Shown in pieces: positions 14,236 to 55,643 of a DNA stretch of 64,000 nucleotides. The notes beneath the pieces are model-generated. The model did no database searches. It was not told the origin of the DNA and worked only from the letters and a program-made list of their open reading frames with translations. Location: the sequence record PV472050.1; one strand, written 5' to 3'. Position 1 is the first letter of the stretch. Each line of letters begins with the position of its first letter. Made by a program: the position numbers and the translations under genes.

Positions 14236-14272
14236 GTTTAAGGGAGTAAAAAGTTAAGTTAAGGAATGAAAC

Positions 14273-37887: not shown

Positions 37888-38481
37888 TTAATACGTGAGG
37901 GTGCCGTCGTAACGGAATTGTCCGTTAAAACGAGGAATGGCGTCGTAATGGCTTTCTACGACAGCCAGGGTACCGGTAACGGTGTTGGAGTCAATGGTAG
38001 CCTGAGTGAACTCCCCGTCGAGGGTAATTTCATCATCCGTCAAGTCGTAGTAGCATTTGGCTTTGATCAGGGTTTTAATGTGTTCAGGGTTACGACTCCC
38101 TTTGAACACCAATACCGCTCCTTCAATGATATCCTCGTCTCGTTTGACTTGGTAAATACCTTCCACTCCCTGGGTTTGTAAAACGTCCCAATCAACCGGA
38201 TCGGGGGTTTCCAGCACGGAGACCTTATTCTTCACATAATCCGCTGGGAGGTACCGTTGGTTCTTACCGGTCAGTTTACCTTCGGAATCGATGTTGACCA
38301 CCCGAGCGAATTCACCACCTTCTACCTCTACTTTCCTGAGGTCAGAGAGGGTAGTGTTGTCCAGGGTGAGTTGTTCTAATACACTAACAATGTTCGGTTC
38401 ATCGGAATAACGTTCTTTATTAAAAGCGATGAACCGTTCCAGAAACAGTAGATCGTTTGGAAAGACCATGGGCGTGTCCAC
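37888..38481 (-). CDS. Probable virion protein, paralog of 25571-26200, with a C-terminal FNGQFRYDG motif
   Basis: Shares the FNKxRY and LTL..T.SD motifs with 25571-26200. Start is GTG 38481 or ATG 38469. Confidence 0.75.
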   Translation of the reverse strand: MDTPMVFPNDLLFLERFIAFNKERYSDEPNIVSVLEQLTLDNTTLSDLRKVEVEGGEFARVVNIDSEGKLTGKNQRYLPADYVKNKVSVLETPDPVDWDVLQTQGVEGIYQVKRDEDIIEGAVLVFKGSRNPEHIKTLIKAKCYYDLTDDEITLDGEFTQATIDSNTVTGTLAVVESHYDAIPRFNGQFRYDGTLTY

Positions 38482-38587
38482 AGAAGTAGATAGAGGGTTC
38501 GGTCATTAGACCATAAAATTGGTAAATAAAATAGTACCCAAACCCATATTCTTCACTTACCTGGTTATTTAACTTGAGGTTCTTTTC

Positions 38588-38607
38588 AAACCTACATAAT
38601 CAGGGTG
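38588..38607 (+). promoter_or_regulatory. Phage promoter motif, copy 7
   Basis: aaacctacataatcagggtg. Confidence 0.8.
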
Positions 38608-38649
38608 AAGCACAGACAGAGACCGTTTAACGGTCAAGGAGCCTTGTCA

Positions 38650-38826
38650 ATGAATACCCATCAGGCCAAACAGGGGTTAGCCCAGCGTGTTGAAACCCTG
38701 CGTCAAAAAGCTCGTCGTTATGCCCGTCAGGCGATGTGTTCCCTAGAACCGTCTTACCGGCAACATTACCGTCAACTGAGCTACGAAGCCAGCCGTATGG
38801 CAGATCGCCTTCAACGTCAACTGTGA
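38650..38826 (+). CDS. Small basic helical protein (58 aa)
   Basis: RBS aaggag, ATG 38650. Confidence 0.7.
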   Translation: MNTHQAKQGLAQRVETLRQKARRYARQAMCSLEPSYRQHYRQLSYEASRMADRLQRQL

Positions 38827-38864
38827 TTGGTGTTTACCCCCCTTCCCCCACACACAGGTGTGAG

Positions 38865-39095
38865 ATGAGCAACGTTATCGATATGTTCAGCTGGCGGGAC
38901 TCGAAGAATAAGCGTTCGAGTCAGTTCTCAGTGCTTCATCGTGAAATCGAAGCACTGTACGTCATTCAGAACCGCGCGCTTCAGGAGATCGCCTCAGCGG
39001 ATACGGTCTTGGCGTATGAACAAGCTAAACTCTTCCTGATGGATGTCAGGATTGAAATCTACACCAAGACCATTGCGTTGAGTCAGTGTATCTAA
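38865..39095 (+). CDS. Small hypothetical protein (76 aa, MSNVIDMFSWR...)
   Basis: RBS aggtg, ATG 38865. Confidence 0.7.
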   Translation: MSNVIDMFSWRDSKNKRSSQFSVLHREIEALYVIQNRALQEIASADTVLAYEQAKLFLMDVRIEIYTKTIALSQCI

Positions 39096-39101
39096 GGACA
39101 T

Positions 39102-39140
39102 TTAACGTCCAGTGGTAATCAAGTCTATATTACTTGGGTG
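39102..39140 (+). promoter_or_regulatory. Extended phage promoter, copy 8
   Basis: ttaacgtccagtggtaatcaagtctatattacttgggtg; the first 32 nt match 40391-40422 at 29 of 32 positions. Confidence 0.8.
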
Positions 39141-39181
39141 ATTAGGTACACAACATTCATTCCTTTTTAGAGGTGTACACC

Positions 39182-39661
39182 ATGGCTAAACAGTCGAACT
39201 TCACCATCGCCAACTACAACGCCGTCCTGGAAGCTGTTAAAGCCAACAACGGTTACGTGATCGACACCCACGGTGGTAGCCGTGGACCTTATCGTGCTGC
39301 TGGTATCGCCGCACTGGTGAAGGGCGAAAGGGTTACCCCGGTGCTGCTGTGCCATGGTTCCTACTTCTGCCTGAACTCGCTGCACAAGGAAGCCGATGGT
39401 TCGGTGACCCTCTCCAGCTGGTCGGTCGGTGGTACCATCTTCACCCACCAACACGGTGGGCTGGAAGAAGCGATCCAAGCCTACAACAAGGAGCAATCCG
39501 AGTGGGCGTTGTCGGGTGGTCAACTGATGCATGTACGCATCTTCGACTACACCGACGAAACCGCACCTGTGTTCGGCGAGCCAGTTGATCTGGCAGGCGA
39601 AGTCGTGGGTGCGCTGGCAGCACAAGAGCCGATCGCCAAGGTCGACATCCCTGCTCAATAA
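39182..39661 (+). CDS. Hypothetical protein
   Basis: RBS gaggtg, ATG 39182; host-like codons. Confidence 0.8.
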   Translation: MAKQSNFTIANYNAVLEAVKANNGYVIDTHGGSRGPYRAAGIAALVKGERVTPVLLCHGSYFCLNSLHKEADGSVTLSSWSVGGTIFTHQHGGLEEAIQAYNKEQSEWALSGGQLMHVRIFDYTDETAPVFGEPVDLAGEVVGALAAQEPIAKVDIPAQ

Positions 39662-39706
39662 CGAGCAGTTTTCTGTACGTAATCTGACTTCATTAGGAGC
39701 AATGCC

Positions 39707-40114
39707 ATGAGTAATGTAATGCACGTTAGCACCATCGCCGGTCGTACCGCCCTGACGGTGATCACACCCGACGACCTGCCGGTTACCAACTGGATGGAAA
39801 ATGTGCTTGCTGCACAGATCCAGAAAGTGGTTGACGAAGGTAAGGGTTGGCCCAACGACGCCGAGTTCAAGGTGGAGGTTACCTACCACACTTGGCCACA
39901 GGGTTGGGACCGGGAAGTGTACACGCACTTCTTTACCAACCGCGCCGAGCTGGACTCCTACATCAAGGACCAGCACGAGTGGGCCCGTTGTGAGGACAAC
40001 ATGGTGAAGATCAAGATCTACAACTGGGACCTCGGTCCGAACTTCATGGAAACTCGTGAGTTCGGTGGTCCTGAGTTGTGGAACAGCCCTCTGAGCCGTC
40101 CTTACTTGACGTAA
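39707..40114 (+). CDS. Hypothetical protein
   Basis: RBS aggag; host-like codons. Confidence 0.8.
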   Translation: MSNVMHVSTIAGRTALTVITPDDLPVTNWMENVLAAQIQKVVDEGKGWPNDAEFKVEVTYHTWPQGWDREVYTHFFTNRAELDSYIKDQHEWARCEDNMVKIKIYNWDLGPNFMETREFGGPELWNSPLSRPYLT

Positions 40115-40122
40115 GGCTAGCG

Positions 40123-40166
40123 CTACCTCCCTGCCACTGGCAGGGAGGTAGTACTCCTTTTATTTT
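40123..40166 (+). terminator. Intrinsic terminator
   Basis: ctacctccctgcc-act-ggcagggaggtag followed by a T-rich tract. Confidence 0.75.
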
Positions 40167-40214
40167 TTGCTTCATTTCCATTTTTATAGTTCACTCAACA
40201 CAACGAGCAAAGTA

Positions 40215-40355
40215 ATGCCTGACACTAACAACGGTCCTGTGGAAATAAAGATGGAACGTGTGCAGTTCAAAAGAATAAAAGTAAGGGGTCTTCGTAAATT
40301 CTGGTTACTCATCAAACGCTTACTGAGTAAGGACACCGATTATAAGAACACTTGA
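40215..40355 (+). CDS. Small basic hypothetical protein (46 aa)
   Basis: ATG 40215 in frame with the track ORF; weak RBS. Confidence 0.4.
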   Translation: MPDTNNGPVEIKMERVQFKRIKVRGLRKFWLLIKRLLSKDTDYKNT

Positions 40356-40390
40356 CGAACGCATGGCTAAGTCAATGGAACTAAGGGTAA

Positions 40391-40429
40391 TTAACTTCCA
40401 GTTGTAATCAGGTCTATATTACCTTTGTG
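40391..40429 (+). promoter_or_regulatory. Extended phage promoter, copy 9
   Basis: ttaacttccagttgtaatcaggtctatattacctttgtg. Confidence 0.8.
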
Positions 40430-40490
40430 TATATTAAGGCGTGGTTGCCTTCCTATTTTTAAGACTGAATAAACACAAAGGATGTTATCT

Positions 40491-40838
40491 ATGAGTCGAG
40501 TCAAGAAGGTGATGAAAGGTGTTCTGAAAGGTAACAGTCGAACGGCCGATAAGTTTGTATTACGGTTGCCAGTTGGGCTACGTGATAAGGTTGGCGAACA
40601 GGCAACGGCGAATGGGCGGAGTATGAATGCTGAATTCATCATGCTCATACAGGCTGCGATAGGCAGTGGGAACACAGGTGGAACCCAAATAAGGACTATT
40701 CCATCGGTAGGTGGGCCTGTTCGGGTTGAAGGACTTCCAGGCGTGGTAACTGAATTGATACCGACACCGACTGGATTTAAGATCCGGGCAAAAACCTGTG
40801 AGGGAGAGGATATTTATTCGTTATGGGAGATTGTTTGA
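40491..40838 (+). CDS. Arc/AmrZ-family ribbon-helix-helix DNA-binding protein with a distinct C-terminal beta domain
   Basis: [34 protein letters not shown] versus P. aeruginosa AmrZ [34 protein letters not shown] (recalled). Confidence 0.88.
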   Translation: [115 protein letters not shown]

Positions 40839-40839
40839 T

Positions 40840-41040
40840 ATGACTCGTTTCGAGAATTCGGATAAGGAAAAGAAACCCAATGTTCCTTTGCAAAACAAGA
40901 TCGGGTTTGCGGGGATAGGACCCGACGATGAACCCATGCTGTGGACACTCACCCTCCCCGGTGAAAACTCGGTAGGTTACGCAGAACCTTTTCGGCCCGA
41001 GAAAGAAGACCTGATCCCTCAACCGGTCTTCTTCGATTAA
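40840..41040 (+). CDS. Small hypothetical protein (66 aa)
   Basis: ATG 40840 after ggaga, coupled to the upstream stop codon. Confidence 0.65.
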   Translation: MTRFENSDKEKKPNVPLQNKIGFAGIGPDDEPMLWTLTLPGENSVGYAEPFRPEKEDLIPQPVFFD

Positions 41041-41051
41041 AAGCGTCATAT

Positions 41052-41085
41052 ACCCTTACCCAGCCGAAAAGGGCTGGGTAAGGGT
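41052..41085. terminator. Bidirectional hairpin
   Basis: acccttacccagcc-gaaaag-ggctgggtaagggt. Confidence 0.75.
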
Positions 41086-41104
41086 TAATCTCTTTATTTT
41101 TTGT

Positions 41105-42160
41105 TTACTTCACTTTGGTAACACACGACGATCTGACCAGTTCGGTGATACCGATCATCGTAGCTGCCACCGCCTCGGTGATCTTATCCACCTCGACCAC
41201 CCCACTCAGCAGTCCTTTCAGCTCATCGAGTTGCTTATTGAGGGCTTCCTTATCGGTGTCGTTACTGTAGTGGTTGATTTGACCTTCCACCTTGGCAATC
41301 TTGCTCTCCAGTACTCGGCGGGTCTCAAAGATGCTCATCCAACTGTTGGACATTGCTTCTTCACAACGACCGATTTTTCGGACAAATTCCTTAGCGGAAT
41401 TGAGGTCTTTGATCGTTGTCACTTTAGGCAAGCCGATAAGTCCATTCACGTATTGCTGGATACCAATAACCATGCCATCCGCTACGCCAGAATCCTCACC
41501 TTCATCTGCCAGTTTCTGGTACTTCGCTTTACGCTCATTCAAACGAGCCACCGCGGCTTCCAGTTTGGTGACCTGGTTGCGCATTAGACTGCTGTAAATG
41601 ATTCTGGACTCAAAGACTTCCTCGATCACCTTCTTGGCCTGTTCGGGTTGGTGTTCCACCGGAAGGGCTTTAATGTCGTCAAGTTTCTTAACCACGGTCT
41701 CCTTGGCGCTTTGGTCCTCGATCTTGTTGGCGATCTGAGTGGCTTCTTGGAGAACAGGCCCCACGTTGGTCGTTGTCACCTTAGGACTCGCTACGGCGTC
41801 TATCGCCTTTTCAGCGGCCTTAGCGGATTCATCTACCTTATCCAGTTTGTCCTTCACCTTCTTCTTGAAGAACCCACCGAAGATCGACTTGAACAGGTTC
41901 TTGATGTATTCCCAGGCTTTCTTAATCCCTTCGCCAATCGACGACAGGAACCCCTCATTCCCCGCCACTTCATTACGGGTCAGGTAACCCGCGGTATGGA
42001 GAACGGACTGAAGGTAACGCTGATTCGCGGTCAGGTCCATTCCTTCAGTTCCCATGACCGTATCCGAGAGACCATCGAGCACTTGCTCAATGTGTTCCAT
42101 TTCTGGAACACCGTCCATCAGTTCGTCTTCGTATTCAACCGTATTGGCTTGCTGATTCAT
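41105..42160 (-). CDS. phiKZ-like internal head protein
   Basis: Acidic propeptide with G-x-E sites (MGTEG, AGNEG), followed by the FLSSIGEGIKKAWEYIKNLFKSI amphipathic motif. Confidence 0.8.
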   Translation of the reverse strand: MNQQANTVEYEDELMDGVPEMEHIEQVLDGLSDTVMGTEGMDLTANQRYLQSVLHTAGYLTRNEVAGNEGFLSSIGEGIKKAWEYIKNLFKSIFGGFFKKKVKDKLDKVDESAKAAEKAIDAVASPKVTTTNVGPVLQEATQIANKIEDQSAKETVVKKLDDIKALPVEHQPEQAKKVIEEVFESRIIYSSLMRNQVTKLEAAVARLNERKAKYQKLADEGEDSGVADGMVIGIQQYVNGLIGLPKVTTIKDLNSAKEFVRKIGRCEEAMSNSWMSIFETRRVLESKIAKVEGQINHYSNDTDKEALNKQLDELKGLLSGVVEVDKITEAVAATMIGITELVRSSCVTKVK

Positions 42161-42177
42161 TATCTGTTCCTTAAGGG

Positions 42178-45000
42178 TTAAAAGAGTGAAAGAACACTCC
42201 GGGAGGTATACAGAGAATGGGTTTCAGGTTCATCCCCCATATCAAACATTTCTTGGCCGGTGATATTACCCAACAACTCATGACCCTGTTCTTTACTCAT
42301 GAGAATGTCCACTTGTTCCTTAGACCATTCCATGATGTTAATACTGCGGGTCATAATGTTGAGTTTATCCCCGGTGTCCATATCCAAGAGTTTAAAGTAA
42401 CAGGGAGCATCCTGACCGGTACGCCAGGTACGGGCTTGGACCTGTTTCACTTCATACTCTCGGAAAGGGGCATTCAACAGAATGGTCAGGTTCGCCATAA
42501 TCAAGGGATACCCTTCCTTCAGGGAATCAAAGATCGCAATCAACGCACGGAGAGTGGGGTCTTTCTCAAAGCGTTTGATATTGGTGTCTCGTTCGTTGCT
42601 GTTTTCACCGTATACTGTCACATTCGGATACCCGGCCTTCGTGAGGTATTCCTCGCAGAGTTTAAGGGCATCCACGTAGGAGGTAAAGATCAGAGTCTTC
42701 TTCTCCACGTTATCGATGAGCTCAGGGAGTCCTGCGTGCGCAATGGTGTCCTTAATAGCGTTAATACGGGCTCGTCCTAAAACGTTCCCTAAGGCCTCTC
42801 CACGCAGTTTTAGACCCAAGTACTTAACCGCAGACTTAATGTTCCTGAAATCCTTCAGGGCGGTCCCTTTAAGGCCCTTCTCGATGTCTTCTTCCACCCG
42901 CTTACAGAACTGACTGTCTTGGTTATCCGTAAAACTGTTATACCCCCGGGTTCTGAACCGGTGAACAATCTGTTTGTACTTCACCAGATTCTCAACCGCT
43001 TTAGCATTCCCCTGGATGGACAGTTCATACGACGTCAGAACATCGTTGTAGAATTCCAAGAAGCTCGGCATATGTTTCGTATAGAACGCAATCCGTTCTC
43101 CAATGTAGATCTGCATTTGGAGGCGAATAGCATCCAAGGTGTATTGATCCGAATTCGGGATCTTCACCTTAACCAGTTCCATAGGAGGAGGATCGCCCAA
43201 TCCCACCAGTTCAGGGATCGTAAACTTCATACGTCCAATACGTCGGCTCAGCAAATCCATTAACGAGGGACGGTTACGTCCATAGGACGCCATAAAGAAC
43301 TCCCGAGCCTTCTTATCGAAGTAGGGATCGATCATACAGGTCGTTGGGAAGATCTCACTCCCCTGAGCCTTTAGCGGCGTCCCTGACATCGGAAGGTGAT
43401 GCCCGAACAGTTCCATGTCGCACCATTCGATCAACTTCCGTGTACGGGCTGCTTTAGGGTCATTGAAGTTCTGGGATTCATCCAGAATCATCTTCAAAGC
43501 GCCTTTATGCTTCTTACTCAGCGCAATGAGGAAGTTCTCCAAGTATTTCCCCATACCACTGGTCATGTAATCGTAATGGACGATGTAGAAGTCATACCCT
43601 TCTTCTAAGACCTTACCGCTGATACTGGTCCAGATACGGGGTGGAACCTTAAAGTGCTGGAGGGGTTGTTCTACCCAGACTTTATCCACAATGTTCATAG
43701 GGCAAAAGACAACCGTCGGAGCCGTATTGATCAATTGAGACCACGCCAAGGACGTAAAGGTATTGTGGGTCACGATGTAGTCATCCACCACATACAGCTT
43801 CTCGTCATTATCCAAGGCAATGCAGCAAGTCTCTTGATTCTCCACTTTCTCCCAGTGCGTCAGCTTCAGTTGCAGGTCTTCATACTGGGAGAAGTCATAC
43901 ATTCCCTGAACACAGGGGTTGTCTCCAATTAACCCAGTCATCATCTTGCCGACGTCTCGGTGCTTAAAGTCAACCTTATACAAACCGTTAACCAACACTG
44001 GCTCCGTAGCTGTTCCTCCAATGGACCACATCAACCGACGGAAGTTCTCCATCCCAATCCGGTTCTCGTGATACGCGGATAAGACGGATTCACTGATTAA
44101 ACACCCCACGTGTTCAATCACCGATGTGACTATATTAAAGCGATCCCGATACGGGAGCTCCAATACGTTGCCCCCTATTACAACGTCGGTATTGACCAGC
44201 TCCCTTGCAGCGACTTCAGAAGACGTATCGCAATGGGGGTTGCATCCATTGATCTCACCCACTAAGGGGAAGTACACATCCTCTTTACGGGCTTTATGGA
44301 GTACTTCCAACGTGGTTAAGATTTCGTCGACCCCATTCACCGTGGTTTTCCACAAATGATACGGATGAGAGTCAGCCGTTCTACCGTCTTCGAAATAGAA
44401 GCGATAAACTTCCGTGATCCCCTGGGGGTAAATACTCTCCACACACGCGGTATCGCCTCCAGGGGTCACTACGATATCCTTGACCTTTAGGTCACCCAAG
44501 GCTTTCCATCCATTTGGGACTTTAACCCGAGTTGAGAGAGGCATGGCTTTCCCTGAACCTGGTTTAGCATCCAGCAGCATCCCTTTCAAGTGATAACTGT
44601 TCACAATGATCGGGTATTGCTGAAGGAAGTCCAACTGCTGAGGAAAGGGAACCGTATTGAACTGATTCAGTTTCTTAAGATCAAAAGGTTTACCTCCCGG
44701 ATTAACCGTATCTTTAATCCAGGTCTCGGTTTCAATGAGTTCCTTCAATTCACTCAACGCTCGTCTGCGGGTACGGAGGTTCCGTATTTTGAGGAGTTCC
44801 CCCACAATGTGGTGCAATTCTACCAGGAAGAAGTTATGCACCTTAATGGTGTCCCAGGATTCGCGTCGAATCTGATGTTTCGTTAAGAGAGAAGTGCTGT
44901 AGAACTTCTCAATGTCTTTGGCTAAATCGTAATAGGACACACCCGTAATGTGTACGTAGTCTCCCGTTTGTTTGATCTTAACTGAAAACAGTCCTAACAT
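42178..45000 (-). CDS. SF2 (SNF2/DEAD-like) helicase containing an intein
   Basis: Walker A PGSGK^T split by an intein, DESQ, MSGTP, motif V/VI EGYPL...QVQARTWRTGQ. Confidence 0.9.
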   Translation of the reverse strand: MLGLFSVKIKQTGDYVHITGVSYYDLAKDIEKFYSTSLLTKHQIRRESWDTIKVHNFFLVELHHIVGELLKIRNLRTRRRALSELKELIETETWIKDTVNPGGKPFDLKKLNQFNTVPFPQQLDFLQQYPIIVNSYHLKGMLLDAKPGSGKAMPLSTRVKVPNGWKALGDLKVKDIVVTPGGDTACVESIYPQGITEVYRFYFEDGRTADSHPYHLWKTTVNGVDEILTTLEVLHKARKEDVYFPLVGEINGCNPHCDTSSEVAARELVNTDVVIGGNVLELPYRDRFNIVTSVIEHVGCLISESVLSAYHENRIGMENFRRLMWSIGGTATEPVLVNGLYKVDFKHRDVGKMMTGLIGDNPCVQGMYDFSQYEDLQLKLTHWEKVENQETCCIALDNDEKLYVVDDYIVTHNTFTSLAWSQLINTAPTVVFCPMNIVDKVWVEQPLQHFKVPPRIWTSISGKVLEEGYDFYIVHYDYMTSGMGKYLENFLIALSKKHKGALKMILDESQNFNDPKAARTRKLIEWCDMELFGHHLPMSGTPLKAQGSEIFPTTCMIDPYFDKKAREFFMASYGRNRPSLMDLLSRRIGRMKFTIPELVGLGDPPPMELVKVKIPNSDQYTLDAIRLQMQIYIGERIAFYTKHMPSFLEFYNDVLTSYELSIQGNAKAVENLVKYKQIVHRFRTRGYNSFTDNQDSQFCKRVEEDIEKGLKGTALKDFRNIKSAVKYLGLKLRGEALGNVLGRARINAIKDTIAHAGLPELIDNVEKKTLIFTSYVDALKLCEEYLTKAGYPNVTVYGENSNERDTNIKRFEKDPTLRALIAIFDSLKEGYPLIMANLTILLNAPFREYEVKQVQARTWRTGQDAPCYFKLLDMDTGDKLNIMTRSINIMEWSKEQVDILMSKEQGHELLGNITGQEMFDMGDEPETHSLYTSRSVLSLF
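43762..44547 (-). mobile_element. Class 3-type intein (262 aa) with a degenerate endonuclease region
   Basis: Starts with Ala (AMPLSTRV) and ends IVTHN followed by Thr. WCT triad: HLW in block B, TCC in block F, THN in block G. Confidence 0.9.
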
Positions 45001-55635: not shown

Positions 55636-55643
55636 GATTTTTC

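Follow-up and report, generated by a model that had tools for sequence, protein, structure and literature searches.

AmrZ and its homologs on mobile elements are the closest described systems for the protein analyzed here. Lys18, Val20, and Arg22 of AmrZ contact bases and recognize both GGC half-sites of amrZ1 (PMC3325190), a site with the architecture GGC, 5-bp A-tract linker, GCC. Borges et al. (bioRxiv 10.1101/673095) detected AmrZ homologs on 14 mobile elements of Pseudomonas and reported reduced levels of the Csy complex for the PaBG, phi3, and JBD68 homologs, in agreement with a preliminary description of the present locus, which had cited phage AmrZ homologs as reported repressors of CRISPR-Cas. 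A second studied relative, Gp53, is a 126-aa early RHH protein of the lytic phage PhiPA1019 (94,085 bp); it has been reported to bind the fleQ, pslA, amrZ, and ftsZ promoters, and its DNA binding and phenotypes are largely lost upon R15A, R21A, M35A, or N36A substitution (PMC13650114). The C-terminal domain goes undiscussed in both reports (bioRxiv 10.1101/673095 and PMC13650114).

The DNA examined is a window of 64,000 nucleotides. Its region 38000–44000 matches Pseudomonas phage MIZ-Pa99 (PV472050.1) at 100% identity and phage EL at 97.7%. MIZ-Pa99 belongs to Elvirus, family Chimalliviridae; this family comprises the nucleus-forming jumbo phages, with Elvirus among the genera (PMC11724907), and the earlier placement of the DNA in a nucleus-forming phage family was thus correct. 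The gene of interest is the ortholog of EL gp163 (YP_418196.1; 91% identity), and it is 91–97% identical in eight EL-like phage records other than that of the window. Its coordinates, 40491–40838, had been given correctly: an AAGGA Shine-Dalgarno sequence lies 8 nt 5′ of the ATG at 40491, the alignment with a distant ortholog begins at this start, and an alternative ATG at 40482 overlaps the ribosome-binding site. The MIZ-Pa99 record omits the gene and annotates two minus-strand ORFs instead. EL gp163 carries the label “partition protein ATPase,” which is a transfer error, because the label sits on a 115-aa RHH protein without an ATPase domain. A syntenic ortholog with 43% identity, again facing an SNF2 helicase gene, occurs in the distant relative L010, where it sits within an operon and has no leader of its own; the gene is absent from other Chimalliviridae. 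Searches of Pfam, PHROGs, and NCBIfam gave no match for the 66-aa gp164-like ORF that follows in the window. When a conserved downstream partner gene was sought beside family members of other phages, none was found, and the gp164-like ORF is not kept there. A gp165-like gene on the minus strand converges on the two-gene RHH/gp164-like unit. An intein considered in the neighboring helicase had no Pfam support.

Table 1. Features of the RHH gene and its surroundings, in window coordinates (PV472050.1 record coordinate = window coordinate + 124000).
Feature	Position	Strand	Remarks
60-nt repeat copy 1, promoter-like, upstream of gp161-like ORF	39081..39140	+	motif 39119–39132
Terminator-like hairpin closing gp161/gp162-like unit	40122..40152	+	14-bp perfect stem, then T-run
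60-nt repeat copy 2, promoter-like element of RHH gene	40370..40429	+	motif core 40408–40421
Palindrome AGGC-N6-GCCT in 5′ leader	40437..40450	+	candidate operator or RNA hairpin; lead only
RHH regulator gene, EL gp163 ortholog	40491..40838	+	intact ORF, 115 aa + stop
N-terminal arm, residues 1–15	40491..40535	+	
AmrZ-type RHH domain, residues 16–58	40536..40664	+	Pfam Arc; AmrZ 3QOQ; model helices
Gly/Thr-rich linker, residues 59–72	40665..40706	+	residues 61–70 mean pLDDT 54; residues 63–65 below 50
C-terminal SH3-like small beta-barrel, residues 73–115	40707..40835	+	predicted model and family homology
gp164-like ORF, 66 aa	40840..41040	+	start 1 nt past RHH gene stop
Terminator-like hairpin closing RHH/gp164-like unit	41052..41085	+	14-bp perfect stem, then T-run

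Residues 16–56 of the window protein matched the Pfam Arc family (PF03869) with a score of 52.5 bits (cut-off 20.4; E = 4.4e-14). The top solved-structure match was AmrZ (PDB 3QOQ; E = 1.3e-8, residues 14–56), followed by weaker matches to Mnt (E = 5.5e-5) and Arc (E = 0.3). For comparison over the full length, AmrZ (108 aa) was taken from P. paraeruginosa ATCC 9027 via a DNA pattern back-translated from the 3QOQ alignment, and BLASTP aligned residues 15–57 of the query with residues 12–54 of AmrZ, 21 of 43 positions being identical (49%). In this register, K21, V23, and R25 of the window protein correspond to the base-contacting K18, V20, and R22 of AmrZ, and R17, R31, and N46 correspond to R14, R28, and N43, such that every counterpart is present; the strand motif differs by one residue only, and in both proteins an extended N-terminal arm precedes the Arc-type RHH. 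The Pfam, structural, and BLASTP matches together bear out the initial reading of an AmrZ-type RHH domain with its DNA-reading residues kept. An AlphaFold2 model built on an 88-sequence alignment (described below) predicted the RHH helices at residues 30–41 and 45–58 with a pLDDT of 88–94, and the N-terminal RHH strand was not formed in this monomer model. In contrast to these likenesses, identity with AmrZ is restricted to the 43 aligned residues, the AmrZ tetramerization domain (67–108) is missing, with an unrelated beta domain in its stead, and the window gene is carried by a phage and preceded by a phage promoter, whereas amrZ is an AlgU-dependent chromosomal gene. Arc and Mnt of P22 belong to the same Pfam family, and Mnt also has a separate C-terminal oligomerization domain; however, their base-reading residues differ from those of the window protein, and they regulate the phage’s own immunity region. 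The nearest NCBIfam model is TprA (NF052309), an AmrZ-type RHH protein on a Pseudomonas mobile element that acts as an ICE conjugation transcription factor. The window protein scores 31 bits against the TprA cut-off of 150, and TprA is 81 aa long and lacks the beta C-domain.

The C-terminal part of the window protein could not be aligned to AmrZ 55–108 by BLASTP or multiple alignment, and an HMM of the phage-type C-domain scored the AmrZ tail at −1.5 bits. AlphaFold2 was unusable with a three-sequence alignment (pLDDT 41.7) and reached a pLDDT of 79 with 88 sequences, predicting C-terminal strands at residues 76–79, 82–92, 95–102, and 105–110 (pLDDT 85–89). These three results sustain the earlier proposal that the AmrZ C-terminal region is replaced by a small SH3-like beta segment. 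Foldseek searches of the PDB and of a viral library returned no match at E ≤ 0.001. The weak fold matches of the C-terminal part from the PDB (all E > 0.1) were without exception to small SH3-like barrels, namely CAP-Gly, Tudor, SH3, the eIF5A N-domain, NusG KOW, and the UvrD C-terminal domain, and those from the viral library were to stand-alone phage barrels of 50–60 aa. The SH3-like assignment is based on these numerous weak but consistent fold matches; “KOW/SH3-like” is a reasonable description of the predicted model at the level of fold and is uninformative on function. The domain has no family in Pfam and no relative among the sequences of solved structures. CarD_TRCF_RID was matched weakly by two of the 88 family members (E = 0.014), which we regard as a lead only.

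A word-indexed search with the single protein recovered full-length relatives from EL-like phages only, and a wider family sharing the C-domain emerged in exhaustive and profile searches. Exhaustive phmmer over 1.84 billion representatives gave 1181 matches, of which those below 1e-30 comprised the EL-like cluster only and several others spanned most of the protein length; once aligned, the matches have a common pattern C-terminal to the RHH domain. A profile made from ten such proteins matched 2996 proteins, the best 120 of which scored 93–163 bits and were nearly all 114–160 aa long. In the 88-sequence alignment, A19, K21, F22, R31, M45, N46, and P71 are invariant, and S16, R17, D20, V23, R25, P27, and G29 are conserved in at least 90% of sequences. 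Of the DNA-contact positions, K21, R31, and N46 are found in 88 of 88 sequences and V23 and R25 in 87 of 88, and the window protein has them all. The family profile matched AmrZ 3QOQ at E = 1.3e-28 over profile positions 1–57, with the Arc, pArc, and Mnt entries at 1e-4 to 1e-9. Homology of the C-domain is seen in two comparisons: an HMM of the C-terminal parts of the 84 non-EL members scored the window C-terminal part at 12.6 bits versus a maximum of 8.4 among 1000 shuffles, and hhalign of the EL-clade C-terminal parts against the 84 other members gave a probability of 94.9% (E = 4.6e-8, 52 columns). The same HMM scored 56 bits for PaBG gp184 and 21 bits for Noxifer gp106, and below zero for AmrZ, phi3 gp09, and the Arc protein of a lambdoid phage. 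The C-domain called swapped in the preliminary description is thus not special to this phage; it is common to the whole of a large, apparently phage-borne AmrZ-like family. Within this family, the 57-aa C-terminal part of the window protein is the shortest in the alignment (median 73), and the window protein is gapped at alignment column 195, the position of the near-invariant Pro of the family tail.

The genomic contexts examined were those of the EL-like phages, L010, SM1-like phages (∼93 kb), PaBG, and Noxifer, as well as phage-like metagenome contigs with genes lacking Pfam matches. The two-domain family is apparently phage-borne; a match in P. parafulva lies in a P2-like prophage, and its tail lacks the shared C-domain pattern in the alignment. 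Some members agree with AmrZ at 37 of 41 core RHH residues, among them a compost metagenome protein (P0192) whose nearest phage relative is Noxifer, and AmrZ N-terminal residues are also present in P0192 and in Noxifer gp106. To judge by sequence, the RHH domain of such members looks like a captured host DNA-binding half.

SM1 gp115 (YP_009594526.1) is 126 aa long and has R15, R21, M35, and N36 at numbers identical to those mutated in Gp53; on the basis of phage size, protein length, and these matching residue numbers, we infer that it is the ortholog of PhiPA1019 Gp53. In SM1 gp115 numbering, R25, R31, M45, and N46 of the window protein correspond to the four mutated Gp53 residues, and all are present. 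The architecture is the same, and BLASTP identity (33% over 97 columns) extends into the C-domain; PhiPA1019 differs in being a phage of ∼94 kb, and its Gp53 is 126 aa long as compared to 115 aa in the window. PaBG gp184 (YP_008433620.2, “amrZ_PaBG”), like the window protein, is from a lytic jumbo Pseudomonas phage and has an AmrZ-type RHH domain with the same C-terminal beta domain. In contrast, PaBG is a Baikalvirus, not listed under Chimalliviridae, and gp184 is 138 aa long, with a longer C-domain tail and an RHH domain much nearer AmrZ. Phage look-alikes of AmrZ have thus been reported as a group before, and the window gene adds a new example to them, not a new kind.

Variation of the gene was compared in seven EL-like genomes, namely those of the window phage, HHBS47_1, HHBS8_1, phiRU, EL, GXNNE2, and IR-QUMS. 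Arg25 is kept in the first four, whereas in EL, GXNNE2, and IR-QUMS it is replaced by Trp (CGG to TGG) and G29 is replaced by Glu; among the 88 family sequences, departures at these two positions are confined to the EL-lineage sequence. The earlier statement that the AmrZ DNA-reading strand is retained nearly exactly accordingly holds for the window protein and fails for EL, GXNNE2, and IR-QUMS. Strict mimicry of AmrZ-site reading is thus not conserved within the genus, and such reading cannot be essential genus-wide. In none of the seven genomes is the ORF disrupted. Pooled pN/pS values, which derive from small counts and four haplotypes, were 0.37 for the whole gene, 0.50 for residues 1–58, and 0.16 for residues 73–115, indicating that the DNA-reading half is the less constrained half.

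Since a terminator-like hairpin closes the upstream unit at 40122–40152, the RHH gene needs a promoter of its own. A promoter-like element lies upstream of it as the second copy of a 60-nt direct repeat (39081–39140 and 40370–40429), the copies of which are 80% identical, and the duplicated phage promoter noted in the preliminary description was confirmed in this form. The 32-nt core of the repeat has two sites only in the 64 kb, versus 0 expected. A phage motif, TCAARYCTAYATWA, occurs eight times in the window (0.23 expected), invariably on the + strand and each time with a T-rich stretch upstream; four of the eight coincide with “putative phage promoter” annotations in EL. The motif core at the RHH gene is a one-mismatch variant of TCAARYCTAYATWA, and the second repeat copy is near-invariant over six EL-like genomes (one variable column). 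In jumbo phages that encode RNAPs, conserved motifs of this kind ahead of operons have turned out to be early virion-RNAP promoters wherever tested (PMC7598289). By analogy, the RHH gene is probably an early one, driven by a variant of the phage’s own promoter motif. An Rfam search found no RNA family in 38000–42500.

The most likely reading of these data, held with about even confidence, is that the gene encodes an early host-directed transcription factor of the AmrZ type. Its main rival is that the protein acts on genes of the phage itself, as Arc and Mnt of P22 do, with operators at its own and the gp161-like promoters, autoregulation, and control over the timing of two small operons, which we consider rather unlikely. 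The layout of the locus favors this rival in several respects: of the eight promoter copies, just these two have the extended 60-nt element; variable columns over the seven genomes number 3 in the 300 nt preceding the gene versus 9–11 per 100 nt inside it; and a GGC-N6-GCC palindrome lies between promoter and ribosome-binding site. The half-sites of this palindrome are of the AmrZ GGC type, and it is invariant over six genomes. Moreover, AmrZ represses its own gene through a GGC-N5-GCC site, recovered upstream of amrZ as a positive control in our scan, and related RHH proteins control their own mobile elements. However, the spacer of the only palindrome upstream of the window gene is 6 nt as compared to 5 nt in amrZ1, and the palindrome is an ordinary one; although its extended form, AGGC-N6-GCCT, occurs once in the window, at least one occurrence was also found in 39 of 100 shuffles (not significant), and 250 nt would contain some GGC-N4-7-GCC by chance with a probability of ∼0.15. 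No counterpart exists at the gp161 repeat copy, no recurrent site was found upstream of family members in other phages, and GGC-WWWWN-GCC occurred once in the 64-kb window versus 0.94 expected, that is, AmrZ-type sites show no excess. In addition, the L010 ortholog lacks a leader of its own, and the protein would have to be imported, the phage DNA being enclosed. Self-regulation by the window protein is thus possible and unsupported by the site scans.

The remaining explanations are less probable still. That the gene is a dispensable accessory gene, drifting, with its DNA-binding function already lost in part of the genus, is distinctly unlikely: R25W and G29E do strike near-invariant family positions in three genomes, the RHH gene is more variable than its flanks, and it has no counterpart in other Chimalliviridae, but the reading frame has survived in every genome compared, pN/pS is below 1 and lowest in the C-domain, the window copy retains every conserved DNA-contact residue, and the syntenic ortholog has persisted in a distant phage. 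Poisoning of host AmrZ through mixed RHH dimers, as the preliminary description had envisaged, would be conceivable in that both proteins are RHH proteins, dimerization proceeds via an intertwined beta-strand and helices, and the two differ hardly at all in the strand and at the helix-2 N-cap. Yet only about half of the RHH residues are identical, helices 1 and 2 differ at many core-facing positions, and Gp53 mutants that lose DNA binding lose all phenotypes (PMC13650114), such that the studied relatives act by their own DNA binding; nothing in the sequence speaks in favor of poisoning or of the proposed repression of defense or receptor genes, and we judge poisoning highly improbable. Least credible of all are the roles of a centromere-binding partition protein like ParG and of an RHH antitoxin whose partner would be the 66-aa gene downstream. 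PHROG families labeled “partition protein ATPase” do match the protein, EL gp163 bears that name, the small gene starts 1 nt past the stop, and FitA-like, HicB, and ParD-like RHH models are matched weakly. Against partition, only RHH-type models are matched, with no ATPase or other non-RHH family among them, and the neighborhood contains neither a ParA/ParF-type gene nor a repeat array. An antitoxin role is opposed by the FitA-like_RHH score of 17.8 bits versus a threshold of 27 and by the downstream gene itself, for which no toxin family was matched and which does not accompany family members in other phages.

An early host-directed AmrZ-type factor is preferred because the DNA-contact residues are conserved, because the two studied relatives behave in this way, and because the phage DNA is enclosed, all of which makes host promoters the most likely target. 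Further points counted for host targeting were the lack of an AmrZ-type site excess in the 64-kb window, the pN/pS of 0.37, and the syntenic ortholog at 43% identity. Counted against it were R25W and G29E in the EL lineage, the faster evolution of the RHH half, and the restriction of AmrZ identity (49%) to 43 residues, as well as self-regulation by AmrZ-type RHH proteins in mobile elements (TprA) and the leader GGC/GCC palindrome as a candidate operator. In the mechanism that we infer for this reading, the gene would be transcribed early from the phage promoter variant, and its product would read GGC half-sites with the AmrZ-type Lys/Val/Arg triad. A 2024 preprint reports early enclosure of the injected genome; with phage DNA enclosed from the start of infection in a nucleus-forming phage, a regulator made in the cytoplasm would encounter the host chromosome first. 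AmrZ-type sites in P. aeruginosa promoters would then be occupied and part of the AmrZ regulon reprogrammed, as in the reports on PaBG gp184 and PhiPA1019 Gp53. The SH3-like barrel, in place of the AmrZ helical tetramerization domain, would most likely provide dimer–dimer or partner contacts, and these contacts would set the strength of promoter occupancy and the downstream outcome.

A bolder extension, which we put forward as speculation and think unlikely, is that the shared barrel is more than an oligomerization module, namely a Tudor- or CarD-RID-like module contacting host RNA polymerase. In that case, proteins of this family would hold RNA polymerase at AmrZ-type sites or obstruct it there, the window protein would stay cytoplasmic and act solely on the host chromosome as a take-over factor early in infection, and the EL lineage with Trp would be a variant with changed or lost targets.

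Through copies of the host master regulator AmrZ, phages have been reported to lower expression of genes for CRISPR-Cas, motility, biofilm formation, and cell division. To judge by the literature, and the 14-element list of Borges et al. aside, the gene described here is apparently the first of its kind described in a nucleus-forming phage, in which, with the phage DNA enclosed, the location of a regulator decides what that regulator can control. The previously undescribed SH3-like C-domain is held in common by PaBG gp184, the Gp53 group, and the window protein and, being without a sequence relative in Pfam or the Protein Data Bank, it sets apart a branch of the AmrZ family that is specific to phages.

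The AmrZ-like ribbon-helix-helix (RHH) domain recurs in phage proteins with different C-terminal halves. Residues of the AmrZ N terminus are common to two jumbo-phage proteins, Noxifer gp106 (L023:1201-1641) and the compost metagenome protein P0192 (L017:5001-5384), the latter matching AmrZ at 37 of 41 core RHH residues. Despite these AmrZ-like N-terminal residues, both carry the phage-type C-terminal domain, a predicted SH3-like beta-barrel, and their host DNA-binding half looks to have been captured recently. An AmrZ-like protein encoded by a P2-like prophage of P. parafulva (L019:8001-8402) instead appears to lack a beta domain and to end in a coiled tail, with an additional RHH-like repeat; the RHH domain has therefore been fused to a variety of C-terminal modules.

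Neither the RHH gene nor its partner just downstream, a 66-aa gp164-like ORF, is called in the GenBank record of MIZ-Pa99, which lists two minus-strand ORFs there instead (see table). The taxonomy line of this record reads Straboviridae, yet the DNA is 97.7% identical to that of EL (Elvirus, Chimalliviridae). In RefSeq, EL gp163 (L001:6001-6348, 115 aa) and phi3 gp09 (L022:1195-1440, 81 aa) are each named “partition protein ATPase”, a name inherited from PHROG families; an ATPase domain is absent from both of these RHH proteins.

Upstream of the RHH gene, window positions 40160-40490 are near-invariant among the seven EL-like genomes compared (3 variable columns in 300 nt). This stretch contains a 46-aa ORF (40215-40355) that is annotated in some records; Rfam, Pfam, and PHROG gave no match. 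In phage GXNNE2, the end of gp162 is divergent, and a different hairpin sequence occupies the place of the terminator hairpin that follows the gp162-like gene (L007:1210-1270, equivalent to window 40100-40160). The motif TCAARYCTAYATWA, probably the EL-type early promoter, was observed eight times in the window, on the plus strand every time, as compared to 0.23 copies expected. Four copies have no annotated EL promoter matched to them: those at 14271, 39119, and 40408 have no such feature nearby in the EL stretch listed, and the one at 55642 falls past the end of that stretch.

Features of the window discussed in this part
Feature	Window position	Strand	Evidence
Helicase, 940 aa, EL gp166, labelled “DarB-like antirestriction”	42178-45000	-	Two-block alignment to SNF2 helicase
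ORF annotated in MIZ-Pa99 record	40391-40675	-	GenBank record
ORF annotated in MIZ-Pa99 record	40777-41049	-	GenBank record
Promoter motif TCAARYCTAYATWA, copies	7189, 14271, 17491, 26277, 38586, 39119, 40408, 55642	+	Motif count

Alignment of the 940-aa helicase with a distant relative's SNF2 helicase (685 aa) gave two matching segments, one covering residues 1-153 and the other 414-924, with approximately 260 additional residues within the Walker-A region. This insert looks intein-like, but an intein domain was not detected by Pfam at E<=0.01.

Many AlgU-dependent host start sites, 78 of the 423 infection-specific ones, reportedly become active when the jumbo phage phiKZ infects its host (PMC8244752). 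As amrZ is driven by the sigma factor AlgU, jumbo-phage infections of this kind may take place with an active AmrZ pathway in the host.
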